Part shown: positions 41,543 to 50,243 of the stretch, piece by piece
How positions within the stretch are numbered: position 1 is the stretch's first letter
How the letters are laid out: each line of letters starts with the position of its first letter
Assembly: GCA_907165135.1 (NCBI GenBank)
Contig: OU015567.1
Location: 5,084,001-5,148,000, forward strand
Length of the DNA stretch: 64,000 bases
Direction of reading: 5' to 3'
Source of the DNA: Oikopleura dioica
Lineage: Eukaryota > Animalia > Chordata
Position numbers and translations under genes: made by a program
Notes under the pieces: model-generated
Databases searched by the model: none
What the model saw: the letters and a program-made list of their open reading frames with translations, nothing else
What the model was told of the DNA's origin: nothing

Positions 41543-43967
41543 GAAAATTTTCCCCGTAATTGTTTTCTCAATAATTAAACTGCAATAAACTTCCGACCGC
41601 CCACGATGGAGCCATGTGACCTTTCAGACTCTTCTTATCTTAAGATTCTGAAGATACAGTAACGCTTCAGTTAGCTTGACAGTCAGAAGCAGGGTCGCTT
41701 ACTGGGTATTTGGTAGCTATCAAATGCTAATCCTGGACGACCTTGAATCACTTGGGCCTAAAGGGCCAGTGACAGTAAATGACAGTAATGGCTTACCTTT
41801 CTTGTGATGAAACAGCTTATTTGACTCGATTAGCCGGCCGTAGGGAGTGTATTCTTGGCGACATTCGGACAGTTTTTCAAGTAGCGTGAATATTAATAAA
41901 ACTGAATTCAAATTTTAATAATTATTTCTCGATTTTTATAAAAAAAAGTAAATAAAATAAATATTTACAAAGGTAAATTTTTCAGAAATCTTATTGGCCT
42001 ATCGCGAAAATCTGATTGGTCAAAAAATTTTTTTTTCTTTCTCGAAAAACTGCCAAAAAAGCTCGAATTTGATCGCTAGCCAAATCTTGTTGGAATGGAT
42101 TTCCAAAGGGAACTCACCGAATTTCATCTTCTTCTTTAGTGGCTAATCCTCTCTTTCTTTAGAACTTTATCTTCCTCGGTGGAAAATTTCGCCCTTTCGA
42201 ATTTTTTCTTGGCGCTCGTCGAGGGCGCTCCGCGGTTTTTTGCTCGTGGAGTTGACCTTGATACCCTTAAAATTTTTAAATCCGCCATTAATCTCTCACG
42301 GGCGCTTGTTGATTACGCTTTTGAATTGATCGGATGCTAAATATTTAGATGGCGGCGGGAATAAGCTATTTTCAGGGGTACTTAAAAATTTTATTAAATA
42401 ACTTAAAATTTTCTAAAAATCCGAAAACCTACCTTGATCAAAAAATTTTCCGTAAATTTTTCGAAAAGTAAAGTTTGCTCTTTTTCTGGAGAAAAAACTG
42501 TTTGAATGGAGTTATTGAATGATTTGTGCCTCACCCTTCCGGCTCTCTCTCTTTCTCTGAGCGACAGTAGTTTCAGCTGTTTGAGAAGAAAGCCAAATCA
42601 AATGTCAGCGTTGCCATTTACCCAAAAAAAACCGTAACGATTATGGCTTCAGAAGCAGCGAAGATTGAATCTTGTGAGCTCGACTTTTCAATTTTCTTCT
42701 GAGAAGATAATCAGCGATCATTTTCAGCAGGCAAAAGGCGTTTTTCAATGGCCTGTCTTTGATTGATAGCAGCACTGTTTTCCTCACTCAGTTTCTTTTC
42801 ATACAGTTTCTTTCTTTTAAAAAGAAATCGGGAGATTCTGTAAAAAACCTGAGTCAGGAAATTAAAAAAAGACAAGAAAACGCGGTTTTTGTGGTCGAAT
42901 AAGATTATTTTTTCAAAAATAAGGGCTTCCCTCCAAAAAGACGAAAATATTTGATAAGAATTTTTTAAGGGTGTCAATCAAAATACCCCTGTTTTAGTAA
43001 GTTTCCTTTTAATTGACAGCCGCCGTATTTCCGCGACACTAAACTCGCGCGGATAAAAAATTAAACGATCATATTTGGTAATGAAATTGATTGTCTTTGG
43101 CTTTACGGTTTCTCAAGAGTAGCCCTTGCCGTTCCTCAACAAACACCATAAATCCCCACGCCAAGTTCAAATTGAATTTTATAATCCCTACTCATCATTT
43201 TTCAGCTGCCCAATCTTATTTGCCAATTCTTCGAAATTTTGAATATTTCGATTTTTTTTGAAAAAAAAACACTAAATTTTTTTTCGATAAGCAGCAGTCT
43301 TTCGTCAAGTTTAACGACTTATCTCTGTGTTTTGCGATGTTTGTCCTTGACACGCGTCTTTTTTAACTGAAATTTTCTTTCAATGACTTACAGTAAATTG
43401 ATAATCCTTATCACAACAACAAAAAAACCTATCTTCGCTGAAAATCGACTTTTGATAACCTTTTTTTTATAAAATTTTCATTCAATAATTTCAACATTCC
43501 AAAAAAGAAAGAAAACCGGATGAAATGACACGAGTCGGATGTCGGTTCTTAGAAGCCCAAATCGCCGGAAGAGCGCGATTGAAGCCGCCGCTCTCGATTT
43601 CCGCCGTTTGTTTCGCGTTTTTTAATTTTCGAAACTTTATAGTTTGATCTCATCAAACTTGACATGTCCGAAAAGACGAAAAACATGAACTTGGAGTTTC
43701 TTTTCAACAAAAGTTCTTTTCGTTTTTTTTTCTACTTGAAAATTGTTCTTCATCGTTAATTTCCTTCTTCTGCAGCTGGTAACACGTATGTCAGAGTTGA
43801 TGTCATATGTTCTTATCTTCCCTGCTTTATGCATCATTTTTTTATTGTCGCAACACGCTTATCTACCACCCGTTCCTATAAAACGCTCCCCAAACCATCC
43901 GCTTTTCATTGAGTCCCTTGTTCAAATATTGCATCAAGAGAGGAGAGAAAAATATAAAAAAAAAAGT

Positions 43968-44922
43968 ATGAAGCTGTTTCATTATTTGATGCTCGGCGCT
44001 GCCATGGTCGAAGCTACCGGTGAGACAACAGCTGCTGGCGAAACTACGGAAGGTGGTAACACTGGCCAGTGGGCTGGAAAATGGGCCCGAGGAAAGAAAA
44101 AGAAGGCAAAGGCACTCGCTGCCAACAATCCTACAACTACAACAACCAGCACCACATCTACGACTACCACGACTTCGACCACTACCACCACAACATCAAC
44201 AACAACCACTTCCACGACGACAACAACCACAACAACCACTCCAACAACAACCACAACCACTCCAACTACCACTTCAACCACTACCACCTCAACCGAAGCT
44301 CCCACCGATCCCCCAACCGAGGCGCCAACTGCACCACCAACAGAAGCTCCCACCACTGGCGTCCCAGTCGACATCGCCTGCACTCTCAAGAAGGGAAAAG
44401 CCCTCGGCTGCGCTAACGTAAGAACTCCCATCTTTCTCCCAAATACCGATCGTTTCTTTTAGTTCAACTTGGCTACTGGTGATGCCCTTGCACAGCAGCT
44501 CATGGCTCTCGGCGAAAAAGGACGAGCTGGAGTTACCTCCGCCGATTTGAGCTACAACCCACGATTGGACGTGGCGACTATCCAGCAGATCCTTGCCTAC
44601 CTTCCAAACCTCAAGGCTGTCAACCTTGCTGGACTCGGCATGAGCCAGGTATGACGCCAACCTCACTTCCTTTAAAAAACCGTTTCAGATGCACCCCGAT
44701 CTTTTCAAAAACAACCCAAGCTTGAAGAACATCAACGTCTCCAACAACAACATCGTCTGCGCCCGAGGCGTCTTCTCCCACCTCAAGCCCAAGAAGATCA
44801 ACTACGGCGGAAACCCTGCCCTCCAGAAGATCACCGGCCGATCCAAGGCCAAGAAGGGCAAGGCTCTCCAGGATATTGAGACCTTTAACTCTATCCCAAA
44901 GGATCACTGTATTTATGTCTGA
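43968..44922 (+). CDS. secreted Thr/Pro-rich mucin-like protein with C-terminal leucine-rich repeats (3 exons)
   Basis: Signal MKLFHYLMLGAAMVEA; poly-T(S) tract and (T)EAPT repeats. LRR segments ADLSYNPRL, LPNLKAVNLAGLGM, NPSLKNINVSNNNI, INYGGNP. Introns 44418-44462 and 44649-44688. Confidence 0.85.
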
Positions 44923-45367
44923 ACAACTGCAACGAGAAAATAAATGCAATTTTTCATATAAAATGAAAACAAGGAAGACTTCTTTCTTTCTTGTCTTTCC
45001 TAAAATTTGTTGATAGGGCAGTAATCTATTTTCGAAATTGAAGATTTTGAGGTAACTGAAATAAGGCGGTAAATGAAGTGGAGATCTAGGCGTGTATCTA
45101 TAGTCAACAAAGGTGATTTTAAGATGAATTGAAGAGGAGAAGAGAAAACTTAAGTTTGAGAATATCCGTTTTGAAGGTCCAAGAACTGTAGTCTCTGCAA
45201 AATCGTGACGTTTGGATTGTACTCTGGCACTGGAAGCTTGACTTTTGACCGGTTTTGAAATCAGCTTGTTCTGAAAACAAGCAAAAATGAATTTTTAAAA
45301 TAAATAAATATCTGTAATTGCATCAAAATTGAACTTTGAAAGTTGTCTGGGCTTTTTTGACTGGCAG

Positions 45368-47159
45368 TTATTTTTCAAAACCATTTTCTATTCTTTCTTT
45401 TTGCGGAAACTTGAGCACCCAGTTTTCGTGGCCCGTCAGTGATTCTGGCAAATGGAATTCTTTCGCGACTACGGGCCATTTTTCGACGTTTTCAAGCTCG
45501 TAGAAGAATTCGTCTGTGTTTCGATTTTGGCTGCATTCGAGGCAGATTCCCAGCGATTTTTGCTGATTTTTCGCGAATTCATCGACTTTGATCGATCTTG
45601 TCAAAAACGATAAAGAAAGAAAAAGGAACAAAGAACGTACTGTAGGCATGCAAAGCAAGTTCGATGGCGAGGATAGGCAGAAAGCGTAGAGATAGAAATG
45701 GCTGCCTCGATCTTTCCCCATTTCCAGAGCTCCAAATTGTTGAAGAAAAGATGCAGAAGTGGGCGCATCGCGGCCACGTCGAAGGAAGCGTATCTGAGGA
45801 GCGATTCTGGCAGTGGTCGACGGGCCCAAATGTGGTGGTCAGTTTTGTGTTTTCCTTTACTAGCTTTGTATTTGAGTAGATCTGCCTCTGTGAAGACTGA
45901 AAATGTGCTGGTAAGAATGGTGATGATCGAAGAAACTTACATTTGTACGCTGACTCCAGTCCCAAAGGATGACCCTTATCACCCGGCTCAACAAACCCAT
46001 CCGTCAGGTGCGCTAGCTTATGTCGATAATGAAACTCCACCGCTGAAATTAACAAATAAACATCAACTCAACAGCTGTCTCGAATTCAAACCTTGGAGAT
46101 CGACATAACTGGCGATTTTGATGCCGAAGCTTGCGTATAAATTGGCAGTATCCGAGCACCCTCCCCAGAAGAATTTGATTTTCTTTGGGTCTTCGAGCAT
46201 CTGACGTAACCAACCGTCTTTTTCTCGAAGTTCTTGATCGCCTGTTTCGAGGATGTCCAGGAGGAAGCAGTTTGGGCTTTCGTATGTGTTGACTGAAAAT
46301 GGGATTTATTCATGAAAAGTACAAATAGCAAGATCTTGTCTTCAAAAACATACTTTGAATGACGGTAATCTTTCCATTTGGTCCAAGCTGGTCTCCTTCC
46401 TGGTCGATCAACAGATAATTCGCCAATTCTACGTATTTCTTCACTTTCGCCAAATCTTTCGGCGTCGCGATATACGCCATTTTCATCGCATCTGGATCCG
46501 TCGGGCCCCGGTCAAAGAACACCTTTAGTTCTTCAACATCAAGGCAGTAACTTTCCCGCCATCGGTAATAAACATTCCTTGCGCAAGCTCGAACAGCTTC
46601 AATTTTTGTTTGTCCCTCTCCGGCAAAATACCTGAAAAGAGCTTTAACAAAAGAAAAAAGTGAGAAAACTTACTGTCCATCAAGATACGTATAAACTTTC
46701 TGGCATGAATTCATCCTCTCGTGGTACAATCGTCCTGGCTTTCTGAAGAATGCGATGAATTCCTTGCTGCAAATGAGCTCGTATTCCTGCCAAATCTCTT
46801 CTGGAGACCTAGAAGTCGGTAAAAACTCGTTCTCAAGGCCAATTTTACTTTGAAAGCAGCTGTTTTTCGACCATGAAGTCTTTGAAAACAGCGATCGCAT
46901 CTTTATTCACAAGGTCTTTTGTTTTCCCTCCCCATGTGTTATCCAGCGTTTTGGAGAAGGGTTTGACTTTTGCTGTGGACATGATGATTCTCTTTTCTTT
47001 CGAAGTCGTGTTGTACTGGTACTTGATCTGGACATTATTCAGTTTCTGAAAGAGCTTGTTATCTACGATCTTCGTCTACCAGACACTCACCAGACAGTAA
47101 AGGTATTCATCATCGGATAAATCGTGATAAACAGGAGCTTTTTCCTTCGTCTCTCCCAT
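45368..47159 (-). CDS. EXD1/Egalitarian-like DEDDy 3'-5' exonuclease with two N-terminal dsRBD-like domains and a C-terminal CxxC-CxxC (Stc1-like) finger
   Basis: Spliced frame gives ExoI LIDQEGDQLGPNGKITVIQ, ExoII LEDPKKIKFFWGGCSDTANLYASFGI..VDLQ and ExoIII WARRPLPESLLRYASFDV. N-terminal ...GGKTKDLVNKDAIAVF and ...YFAGEGQTKIEAVRACARNV; C-terminal CFACLQSIKVDEFAKNQQKSLGICLEC. Confidence 0.85.
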
Positions 47160-47456
47160 CTGACCTCTTCTTTCTTAAATTTTTGGTTGATGAAGAAATC
47201 CGAAAATATTGAATTTGTTAAAAAGATACAGAAAGAAAAAATGATACTGTATGATACTTGAATAGGATTCGAATGAAATTTTCTGATTGTACAAAGAAAA
47301 GAAAGAGTTATAAATAGAGAAGGGATGAGAAATCGAATTTTCATGACTTGTGTTGACTTGTTTTTAGTTGATTCTAATGCAGCAGAAATAGTTTTTAGTA
47401 GGCACTGTTCTGGAAATAGGGAATGAAGCAGGGAGTTTGTTATACTTTGAAGAGAG

Positions 47457-47573
47457 CTGCGCTCAACAACCTGCGTAGAAAACCTGACTCAGAGTCTGAA
47501 AGATGCCGGCTTTTCATTAGAACTGCTCTTTCATGAACCCGACTCAGGCTTTTTGCGCAGTTGGTGAGCTCAG
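47457..47573. mobile_element. family B hAT MITE with perfect 8-bp TSD
   Basis: GAAGAGAG (47449-47456) | CTGCGCTCAACAACCTG ... GCAGTTGGTGAGCTCAG | GAAGAGAG (47574-47581). Confidence 0.88.
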
Positions 47574-47763
47574 GAAGAGAGGAACTATAATAATGGTTTA
47601 CGCGCTTTTCAACTATTCCTGGATGAATATTGAAAACTTTTTCTAAATATTAATCAATTATTAATTTTAGCATAAAAATTATGTTCAGATTGAATTCTTC
47701 TTTCATTTTTTGAGAAGCAATATTGCACGGGTAGGTTCTTTTCAAAAAAGGGTTCTTTTTTCT

Positions 47764-50243
47764 TTACAGTAAGCTTCCAAGATTGTCTAAAGAGGTCTTT
47801 TTCTGTGGTTGTTGGTTTTGTTGCTGATTCTGCAAGCCCATGCCGGCGAACTGGTTCTGCATTTGGCCCATCATTGGATTTTGCATTTGGTTCGAGTTCA
47901 TGTTCATGTTTGGATTCGGCTGCTGTTGAAATTGGGCAAAATTGGGCGCACCACCCATTTGGCCCATTTGTTGCTGTTGGGTAATCTGCTGGTTCGCCAT
48001 TCCGCCAAACTGTGCTTGGCCCATCATACCATTTGGCTGCCCCATCATTGGATTCATGCCACCCATTGGGGACATTGTTGGGAAACCTCCCATGCTCATG
48101 TTATTCATTGGAGATGCCATGTTCATGGAGTTGGTGGAGCTTGAAGTCGACATTTGATTCATGGAGATTTTTTGCTTTTGTTGAGCGGGTTTCCCAAGCG
48201 AACTTAACAAACAAGAAATTAAAGGCTTACACATACAATCAGACTTACGTTAGATCGATGTTGACTCCAGAAGATTTCCACGTAGACCCTACTTCTTTCG
48301 GCTGCGCTGGGACTTTTGGCTGTGCCACTGGAGCAGCTGTAGCTGGATTCGGGGTTGGATTCAAGCCGCCAAGAAGATCAAAGCCTGAAGTTCAAGTAAA
48401 TTCTGAGTAAAGTTGAGTTGATCAACCTGCACCGGGAGGAGGCTGTGAAGAATTATTTGATGCTGGAGTTTGGACTGGATTTGACCCGCTCAAAGAGGCA
48501 AAAAGGTCAACTTGGGGCGCCTGGGCCTGAGCTGGAGCAGCACTGACAGGGGCAGAAGCGAATAAATCGGGTTGTTGAGGAGTTGGCTGCGCAGGAGAGG
48601 GAGTAGCTTCGCCCCAGAAAGAACCACCATCATTTTGAGGAGGAACTGCTGCTGCGACCGGTTGAGCTGCTGGTTGAGATGCGAATGCGTTTCCAAAAAG
48701 ATCCACGGAGCGATTCTCGGAAATCGGCGCAGAATCAGAGACGGAGAAGAGGTCGTTACTTGAGGAAAGTGGCTGGGAGCTAGGAGCAGCAGAAGCCGTG
48801 TAATTCAACGCAGCTCCAAGATCAACCATTTTTCGTGGCTGTGAGGACTTCTTTTGTGATGTTACTCGCGGAGTGGTCGGGGCAGCGGCGGGTTGGGCGC
48901 TTGTTGAAGATGGCGTATTGGAAATGGGACGGCTGTTTCGCATACTGTCAAAGTCAGCCCAGCCGGATTCGTCGCCACTGACCTGAGTTGGGGCGCCGCC
49001 TCGGCCAGAAGGATCGTCATTGTCTGAATGACACTCGCGGACGCCTTCGTCCCAATCCCAAGTGTTGCCTTGACCCTTAGTGAAAAATGAGACTCATAAT
49101 TTGGGGAATGTTTGGAGAATCTAGATCGAATCAACCGGGTGCTTACCTTGTAATCGTCCTTATCATCCGCTACATCTTTGTAGCCCGACCCTCCTCTATC
49201 ATCGTCCCATCCTCCGCTAGAACTTCCTCCCCAGCCGCCAGAAGCGCTCGATCGTCCGCCCCATCCGCCTCCTAAAAAAACGTCAGTTCTATGCTCTGGT
49301 TAAGAGTTGGTTTCTTACCATCAGACCCGACGCCAACATATTTGTCTCTATTTTTCTTCGCCTTTTTGCGCTCTTCTCTCAACGCTTCATCGTCATTGAT
49401 CAGGGCGAGTAGATCTTTGGCTCGATTTCTCACGTTTATTCCTAAACAAAAATGTTTTCGCCGAGTTTTTTTATTCTTACCTTGATCCTTTCCCTTCTCA
49501 TCCGTGTGAGTGTAGTGCTCCAACGCTCGCATGTCATAGAGGTGATCCCTCGCAACGCCGACGACTCGTTCCGATCCATTTTTCAAAAGATAGTCCAACA
49601 GCAACAGGGACTTGTACGCTCTTCGCCAGTTTTTCTTCCCCTCTGAAATTTATCACTCTCAACACGGAAGGGGGCTTAACTAACCTTGAAACATGCGTTT
49701 CCAAAGCATTCCAGTGCCGCTGCCGCAGATTTCTGTGAAATATTCGTATTGAAATGTCATTTTCGCTAGATCCGCCATTTGTGTTCCTAAAACAGCGCCA
49801 TAAAACCGGTTTTTAGAACTCAAGTAGGAGATATTTTTTAGATGAAGAAGTTAGTAATTTATTTTAACGGTTTATAACCAATTCTATCATAGAACTTTTG
49901 AGTCTCCCATTGAGAGCGGAGCGATAAATTGAAACATTATGAAATGTGAGCCACAGCTTTTACCTGATGGTCCCCAAGGATCGTCATTTGTTGCTTCTCG
50001 GACTTGAGCCTCAGTTTCTGTGTAGTTCATGACCACATTTGTCGCCTAAAATTCATTAAAAATCATTTTTATTGCTGTAATATAGGAGCCGCTTGCGGCT
50101 TGAATATTCTTTGACGCGAAGAAGCGAGCATTGTCTCGATTATCAGCAAATATTCTAGAGAAAATGAAGGACAAGAATACCTTGTCGATGAGTCCACGGA
50201 CTTTCCACATCGAGGTCGGCAAATTATCCTTTATCAAATCCAT
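47764..50243 (-). CDS. CLINT1: clathrin interactor 1 / epsinR (ENTH domain, Met-rich C-terminus)
   Basis: MWKVRGLIDK|..VVMNYTETEAQVREATNDDPWGPS; KNWRRAYKSLLLLDYLLKNGSERVV...DQGINVRNRAK...LREERKKAKKNRDKYVGV; DLF motifs and M/Q/G-rich tail as in vertebrate CLINT1. Confidence 0.93.

Follow-up and report, generated by a model that had tools for sequence, protein, structure and literature searches.

Exonuclease domains of the Egalitarian and EXD1 type are known to serve as platforms for RNA binding, and their catalytic role is either unclear or lost. In Drosophila Egalitarian (Egl), a protein of ~1,000 amino acids (aa), the exonuclease domain is accompanied by three winged-helix Egl domains of LOTUS-like type, by a tetrahelical domain adjacent to the exonuclease, and by regions that bind BicD and LC8 (PMC13186709). 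Egl binds RNA stem-loops around its exonuclease site and retains the DEDDy catalytic pentad although the pentad is dispensable (PMC13186709; bioRxiv 10.1101/2025.08.03.668247): mutation of these residues leaves the binding of RNA and the function in vivo unaffected, and the role of Egl as an mRNA adaptor does not depend on them (bioRxiv 10.1101/2025.08.03.668247). The exonuclease-like domain of EXD1 is described as inactive (bioRxiv 10.1101/2025.08.03.668247, citing Yang et al. 2016). Here we describe a gene of Oikopleura dioica that lies on the minus strand at 45368..47159 of a 64,000-nucleotide (nt) stretch of DNA (GCA_907165135.1, contig OU015567.1, positions 5,084,001 to 5,148,000; hereafter the window, to which all coordinates refer). 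The gene encodes a 488-aa protein with two N-terminal modules of predicted double-stranded RNA-binding domain (dsRBD) type, an Egalitarian-type DEDDy 3'-5' exonuclease domain with an intact pentad, a single C4 zinc finger and an acidic tail. This is a new domain arrangement inside the known DEDDy superfamily, and our literature search found no paper describing a dsRBD-fold pair together with an Egalitarian-type exonuclease and a zinc finger.

Minus-strand frames joined at GT-AG sites give eight exons and seven introns between the ATG at 47159 and the stop codon at 45370-45368. The exons lie at 47159-47091, 47045-46849, 46808-46674, 46631-46354, 46292-46092, 46042-45941, 45896-45641 and 45596-45368 (stop included), and the introns measure 45, 40, 42, 61, 49, 44 and 44 nt in gene order. 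The first-pass annotation of the window had given exactly these gene limits and proposed that GT-AG splicing yields one protein of ~500 aa. This is borne out by the GT-AG model, by colinear mRNA-derived relatives and by a public O. dioica protein (Oidioi.mRNA.OKI2018_I69.chr2.g5309.t1, hereafter P0022) that is identical to the model over 488/488 residues. The locus is on chr2 of the Okinawa O. dioica assembly, where the public annotation has the same exons and gives the protein no functional name. One detail of the first-pass annotation needs correction: 'LLFQKLNNVQ', quoted as part of module 1, reads into intron 1, and the real junction is ...YCL/KLNNVQ, as in the mRNA-derived relative P0021. 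P0022 was retrieved by querying HMMER exhaustively with exon 5 and then searching with the best match, and it was used for the full-length analyses.

The relatives of P0022 give strong, though indirect, evidence that these exons belong to one coding unit. P0021, P0001 and P0024 (72%, 53% and 46% identical to P0022, respectively) as well as P0023, P0025 and P0026 (37-40%) are each encoded by a single uninterrupted open reading frame (ORF), in contigs 1.5-2.1 kb long. Eight mRNA-like contigs (L001-L008) hold the whole architecture within one ORF. Five of the eight share a leader at the 5' end (the full 40 nt in L001; its 3' 17-21 nt in L002, L003, L006 and L007), which we take to be the Oikopleura spliced leader; it stands 0-54 nt before the ATG and abuts it in L006. 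Identity within the spliced-leader-bearing mRNA set is 36-72%. Poly(A) ends L001 and L007, and a short A run ends L008. The relatives' contigs are thus spliced mRNAs that bear the N-terminal modules, the exonuclease and the zinc finger jointly. The family alignment is colinear across 7/7 junctions of P0022, and L009, a genomic contig from a close relative of P0024, has introns at the positions of introns 4 and 6 of the P0022 gene but lacks introns 5 and 7. As the public RNA reads are of a divergent strain, the joined model might be suspected of being an annotation artefact, i.e. an RNA-binding protein gene and an exonuclease gene fused in silico. However, the single ORFs of L001-L008 (five with the spliced leader ahead of the first ATG), the colinearity of all junctions with the relatives' ORFs, and a full-length AlphaFold model whose predicted template modelling score (pTM) of 0.75 suggests that the domains pack together make such an artefact extremely improbable.

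The exonuclease domain (residues 187-380; 45739..46474, minus strand) is recognized by Pfam, family alignment, Egalitarian profile match and Foldseek. Pfam PF01612 (DNA_pol_A_exo1) matches P0022 at 6.4e-14 and 52.6 bits, above the cut-off of 23.6, over profile positions 3-170 of 173. Scored as single exons, exon 5 reaches 22.9 bits and exon 7 reaches 16.5 bits. An exon-by-exon Pfam scan found the exonuclease alone, because introns split module 2 and the finger and made them invisible to it, and exon-by-exon searches of Protein Data Bank (PDB) sequences returned weak Egalitarian, Rrp6 and Mut-7 matches together with spurious repeat-protein matches. All four acidic residues and the tyrosine that the first-pass annotation had read from DQE, GGCSD and YASFD are present, i.e. 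D210/E212 in ExoI (46405-46397), D274 in ExoII (46152-46150) and Y363/D367 in ExoIII (45792-45778), and they are invariant or nearly so among 12 family members: D210, E212 and D274 are invariant, and so are Y363 and D367 in every row that covers them.

Against PDB sequences, the family profile matches the exonuclease domain of Drosophila Egalitarian (9uju_C) at E 1.5e-15 with the catalytic residues aligned: D210, E212, D274, Y363 and D367 of P0022 correspond to Egl D561, E563, D621, Y704 and D708 (numbered as in bioRxiv 10.1101/2025.08.03.668247). Trypanosoma brucei RNase D is the second solved match (6.7e-5), and no EXD1 chain appears at E <=0.1. Foldseek with the full-length model likewise places Egalitarian first (9rw3_D, 4.4e-9), followed by T. 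brucei RNase D, Rrp6, RNase D, Nibbler, EXD2, Exd1 and WRN. On its sequence, the exonuclease core is a member of the Egalitarian branch of the RNase D-like DEDDy 3'-5' exonucleases. Of the double label 'EXD1/Egalitarian-type' in the first-pass annotation, the second half is therefore correct and the first less apt, because both profile and Foldseek put Egalitarian first and EXD1 chains fall beyond E 0.1 in the profile search. Past the core, the full-length model has about two helices (371-381 and 387-401; pLDDT, the predicted local distance difference test, is 91, 92 and 81 in successive blocks of residues 371-400), then the zinc finger and a disordered tail. The second helix lies in a predicted helical linker (residues 383-403; 45670..45732, minus strand).

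We then compared this protein with its described relatives. P0022 shares with Egl the pentad, the motifs D-x-E-G, DAANLY, WA-x-RPL and YAA-x-DV, and the addition of nucleic-acid-binding-type modules before the core. By contrast, it is only 488 aa long and its zinc finger is of C4 type, and its N-terminal 178 residues are predicted to form two dsRBD-fold modules and not three LOTUS-like domains. T. brucei RNase D, the second-best solved relative (Foldseek 1.1e-8), also joins a DEDDy core to a zinc finger, but it has no dsRBD-fold modules and its finger is CCHC by PDB entry name. The likeness to EXD1 lies in the exonuclease fold (Exd1 5fis/5fiq, Foldseek 3e-6 to 5e-6) and, as a lead only, in an echinoderm EXD1-like cluster among the nearest ESM Atlas neighbours (score 0.86). 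Unlike EXD1, P0022 has an intact and conserved pentad, and its N-terminus is of dsRBD-type fold, whereas that of EXD1 is reportedly Lsm-like. Mut-7/Nibbler resembles P0022 in the fold of the exonuclease core alone (7jw2/7jw6, Foldseek), and P0022 has no Pfam match for the N-terminal helical domain or Mut7-C.

The N-terminal modules are each predicted to form an alpha-beta-beta-beta-alpha unit. Module 1 (residues 16-83, spanning intron 1; 46866..47114, minus strand) is predicted as helix 16-25, strands 29-34, 41-46 and 53-57, and helix 66-83, with pLDDT of 80-92 except for the loop 61-70. Module 2 (residues 91-161, spanning intron 3; 46550..46804, minus strand) is predicted as helix 104-111, strands 117-120, 125-131 and 134-140, and helix 143-161. 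An AlphaFold2 model of the N-terminus from a 14-sequence alignment has pLDDT 84 and pTM 0.75, and the full-length model reproduces both modules. The best PDB matches of the N-terminus by Foldseek are MLE, Loqs-PB, TARBP2, DRB4, NF90, TRBP, R2D2, ADAR2 and DGCR8 (E from 6.6e-4, probability up to 0.99, alignments up to ~170-180 columns), and ~170 columns align to tandem-dsRBD proteins, e.g. MLE 5ztm at probability 0.96. VIA-align, applied to a Foldseek-ranked set and in an independent exhaustive scan of 48,161 chains, aligns module 2 with dsRBDs of R2D2, Dicer, ADAR2, MLE, TRBP, RNase III and Staufen at Z 5-6.7 and a root-mean-square deviation of 2.3-3.2 A over 51-65 residues, and most of its top rows are dsRBDs. 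An ESM Atlas shape search with the N-terminus returned dsrm-bearing clusters; an ESM Atlas search with exon 2 as query gave no usable match, and an N-terminal profile matched no PDB sequence. From these models we assign module 2 to the dsRBD fold, since its matches fall consistently in one family although their Z is middling, and regard module 1 as dsRBD-like, from its topology and the tandem alignments rather than as a separate domain. An internal duplication relating modules 1 and 2 was considered and rejected (local score 24 vs 21.4 +/- 4.0 for shuffles).

The sequence signatures of these modules are uneven. Module 2 (GEGQTKIEAVRACA) resembles the dsRBD helix-2 signature: the start of its helix 2 reads GEGQTK (138-143) within GEGQTK-x-EA, a near copy of the signature in P0022 and its closest relative P0021, whereas most other members have GED... 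(GED-x-x-I), so that GxG is not conserved. The pattern G-x-G-x-[ST]K-x2-A, which the first-pass annotation had seen in both modules, is found in module 2 and fitted only loosely by module 1 (WGGKTKDLV). Family-invariant in module 2 are F109-x-R111-K112-P113-x-R115 (helix 1 to strand 1), E139, A146 and Y155, while C150 is nearly invariant. Like Loqs, TRBP, R2D2, DRB4, MLE/DHX9, ADAR2 and Staufen, P0022 has two consecutive alpha-beta-beta-beta-alpha modules; in contrast, none of these tandem-dsRBD proteins carries an exonuclease, and P0022 and its family give no Pfam dsrm match and do not conserve the KKxAK lysines. The tandem dsRBD of the first-pass annotation thus stands as a predicted fold, most clearly for module 2 through Foldseek and VIA-align, and falls short in these two sequence hallmarks.

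The C4 zinc finger (residues 404-437, spanning intron 7; 45524..45669, minus strand) is defined by a motif alignment and a sub-threshold Stc1 match. Its motif is C408-x2-C411...F420-[AS]-x2-Q424-x-K426...C431-x2-C434, here CFAC...FAKNQQK...CLEC, and the pattern C-x2-C-x8-F-[AS]-x2-Q-x-K-x4-C-x2-C is invariant in 11 members. Pfam Stc1 (PF12898) scores 14.7 bits for P0022, 16.6 for its C-terminal piece and 20.9 for the best family member, below the gathering cut-off of 24.8. The alignment covers profile positions 50-83 of 84 in P0022, and the sub-threshold match recurs in 8/9 full-length members scanned, always at profile positions ~38-84. Compared with the solved Schizosaccharomyces pombe Stc1 (2luy_A), the finger profile aligns CxxC-x8-F-[SA]-x2-Q-...-CxxC to both repeats at E 0.18 and ranks this second, slightly outscored by ribosomal protein eL37. 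Since P0022 has just four cysteines past residue 272 (408, 411, 431 and 434) instead of the eight of the tandem, LIM-like Stc1, it contains one zinc unit and not a tandem Stc1 domain. Judged by its residues, the finger therefore resembles half of the tandem domain and is not a member of the Stc1 family. The Stc1-like pattern C-x2-C...F-x-K-x-Q...C-x2-C of the first-pass annotation is real; the family assignment does not follow from it. Of the Pfam models that this annotation had named, DNA_pol_A_exo1 is thus above its cut-off, Stc1 is below and dsrm gives no match. The protein ends in an acidic tail (residues 438-488; 45371..45523, minus strand) that is predicted to be disordered (pLDDT 28-46) and has a net charge of -2 to -7 in the 11 members that have it.

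The family with this architecture is small, multi-member and found so far just in appendicularian sequences. When 1.84 billion representatives were searched exhaustively by HMMER with exon 5, 12 proteins matched at E <=0.001, 10 of which are family members or fragments; the other two, long proteins matched in several stretches, are taken as spurious. The O. dioica protein aside, all members of traced origin are on short contigs from Joint Genome Institute, Logan or ENA data. Their tree has two well-supported clades, P0022, P0021, P0024 and P0001 versus the rest. A word-indexed search with the family alignment gave fewer members than the single-protein search and is uninformative on distant relatives. 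A related domain combination is seen in an ESM Atlas cluster of giant-virus proteins (Nucleocytoviricota; 67 members of ~300 aa), in which PF00035 (dsrm) occurs in 81% and PF01612 in 91%; its feature score of 0.83 makes it a lead only, and it has no reported zinc finger. Because the family alignment found no relative in viral contigs, this cluster remains a lead, indicating that a combination of dsRBD and DEDDy exonuclease exists elsewhere; viral structure matches are also no better than Egalitarian. The impression recorded in the first-pass annotation, that no animal protein has this architecture, holds within the searches made, but must be qualified by the gene's own multi-member appendicularian family and by the giant-virus lead. 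On two mRNA-like contigs of P0023, L004 (1434-1736) and L005 (1472-1783), a second ORF of 100-103 aa was called, overlapping the exonuclease ORF at its end; it could represent a bicistronic/operon-type transcript or an over-call.

Exon structure, conserved pentad, dsRBD-type folds, conserved C4 finger and disordered acidic tail are together consistent with an active 3'-5' exoribonuclease that a non-canonical tandem dsRBD unit directs to structured RNA and that makes further contacts through finger and tail, a reading to which we give about an even chance. The protein would then be a metal-dependent enzyme. Its compact dsRBD-fold pair would hold or select RNA that is base-paired or folded into a hairpin, or else a partner protein; the exonuclease site would then trim the 3' single-stranded end of the bound RNA, and the zinc finger and tail would give further RNA or partner contact. 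The substrate may be a small RNA, a precursor of rRNA, snRNA or tRNA, or an mRNA element. Several observations weigh against this. Pfam dsrm (PF00035) has no match at E up to 10 in P0022, in P0022:1-175 or in eight other family proteins (two of these, being fragments, include only part of module 2 or none of it). The dsRNA-contact lysines KKxAK are not conserved across the family, and P0022 has just K143; the N-terminal modules are weakly basic; and a structure Z of ~6 is middling on VIA-align's own calibration. The zinc finger has pLDDT <50 in the full-length model, its fold not being resolved by AlphaFold. Because Egalitarian's conserved pentad is dispensable for its known function, an intact motif is no proof that activity matters. 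Finally, public RNA runs under the same species label place just 2-4 reads on the locus (window 44400-48400) at 90-95% likeness; these reads are of a divergent strain and bear on neither splicing, transcript ends nor expression. Such likeness fits deep divergence among O. dioica lineages, and public RNA therefore needs strain matching to be useful. As the KKxAK lysines are not conserved whereas the F-x-R-K-P-x-R loop is invariant, RNA binding by the modules, if any, would probably be non-canonical. Modules of dsRBD fold that lack the lysine motif often serve to contact proteins, and a protein-binding role is conceivable here too.

A plausible special case of the exoribonuclease reading is a small-RNA factor that would shorten small interfering RNA, Piwi-interacting RNA or microRNA duplexes or precursors at their 3' ends, and dock on Argonaute/Piwi or a chromatin complex via the Stc1-like finger. 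It would agree with the intact catalytic site, with the best matches of the tandem dsRBD fold among the Dicer partners Loqs, TRBP, R2D2 and DRB4, with the roles of the fold relatives Nibbler and Exd1 in small-RNA pathways, and with the resemblance of the finger to the Stc1 domain, which is said to be the Ago1-binding part of Stc1. Yet Dicer partnering is just one use of the dsRBD fold, the nearest sequence relative is Egalitarian and not Nibbler or Exd1, and the Stc1 similarity is sub-threshold, confined to one half and no stronger than the eL37 similarity; this role is possible but unlikely. That Egalitarian is the best match in both sequence and structure, binds stem-loop RNA at an exonuclease site with a dispensable pentad, and has extra nucleic-acid-binding-type modules ahead of its core would instead suit an adaptor, in which the exonuclease domain and its flanks would be a binding surface for structured RNA (in localisation, storage or transport) and catalysis would be secondary. 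This we consider quite unlikely, as the N-terminal modules are dsRBD-fold and not LOTUS-like Egl domains, no BicD- or LC8-binding regions were identified (no motif search was aimed at them), and five catalytic residues invariant across two deep clades are more easily explained by retained activity. Foldseek matches of the fold, at E 1e-6 to 1e-8, to RNase D, Rrp6, WRN-exo and EXD2, the combination of DEDDy core and zinc finger in T. brucei RNase D, and the protein contacts often made by dsRBD-fold modules that lack the lysine motif would also suit an exonuclease that is DNA-directed (WRN/EXD2-like, in repair or replication) or housekeeping (RNase D/Rrp6-like, in stable-RNA maturation), with the extra modules as scaffolds. 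A lineage-restricted family with several fast-diverging clades would be unusual for a housekeeping enzyme, and the Pfam scan shows no HRDC or helicase domain, which leaves this role improbable.

Downstream of the stop codon, an open frame in another reading frame (110-220 nt past the stop; 45150..45260, minus strand) encodes ...EYNPNVTILQRL..., identified by tblastn against the relatives. It corresponds to the C-terminal tail motif of P0001 (10/12 identical, tblastn E 0.001) and P0024, and in the genomic relative L009 the motif is continuous with the zinc-finger exon. P0022 and the polyadenylated P0021 mRNA both end before it. In-frame GT/GC-AG joins are possible, e.g. from a GTTTTG donor at 45381 (like the intron 5 donor) to AAG or CAG acceptors, with an exon start at 45241 or 45229. 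The frame at 45150-45260 may thus be a last exon that is used alternatively and is missing from the annotation, or the remnant of an ancestral terminal exon; it can be argued that the motif is still in use, because it is conserved after the split of P0022 and P0021. A bolder proposal, to which we assign a small chance, combines this motif with the small-RNA role: an appendicularian-specific family of active Egalitarian-type exonucleases would serve as a small-RNA 3'-end trimmer or RNA interference coupling factor, in which the tandem dsRBD unit takes the measure of, or holds, duplexes of small RNA or their hairpin precursors, the half-Stc1 finger docks on Argonaute/Piwi, and a conserved tail, ...NPNVT[IV]LQRL, subject to alternative splicing, brings about a change of partners.

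At the other end of the gene, an AG directly upstream of the ATG (47160..47161, minus strand) is a candidate spliced-leader trans-splice acceptor. Because this AG precedes the ATG and five relatives' mRNA contigs start with the spliced leader, the 488-aa gene is, by analogy, probably trans-spliced at or near its start codon. There is no second copy of the gene inside the 64-kb window, and an Rfam scan of the window gave no match. The tail-to-tail neighbour (43743-44922, plus strand) has its stop at 44922, 445 nt from the stop of the exonuclease gene, and has a long mucin-like ORF rich in Thr and Pro, after which come segments resembling leucine-rich repeats, with AATAAA just past the stop. Upstream on the same strand, an ORF at 47764-48234 (minus strand) encodes a Gln/Asn/Met-rich low-complexity protein and ends 600 nt before the ATG of the exonuclease gene.

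In brief, what appears new in this family is a pentad strictly conserved in a core that is set behind two predicted dsRBD-fold modules and ahead of a conserved zinc finger. If the protein is merely RNA-binding, it would represent a second, independent route to an Egl-like adaptor. If it is active, it would provide a compact, testable case of an exonuclease aimed at structured RNA and would be a candidate for a part in the silencing or processing of RNA in Oikopleura, a chordate that evolves fast and in which many conserved pathways have been lost or replaced.

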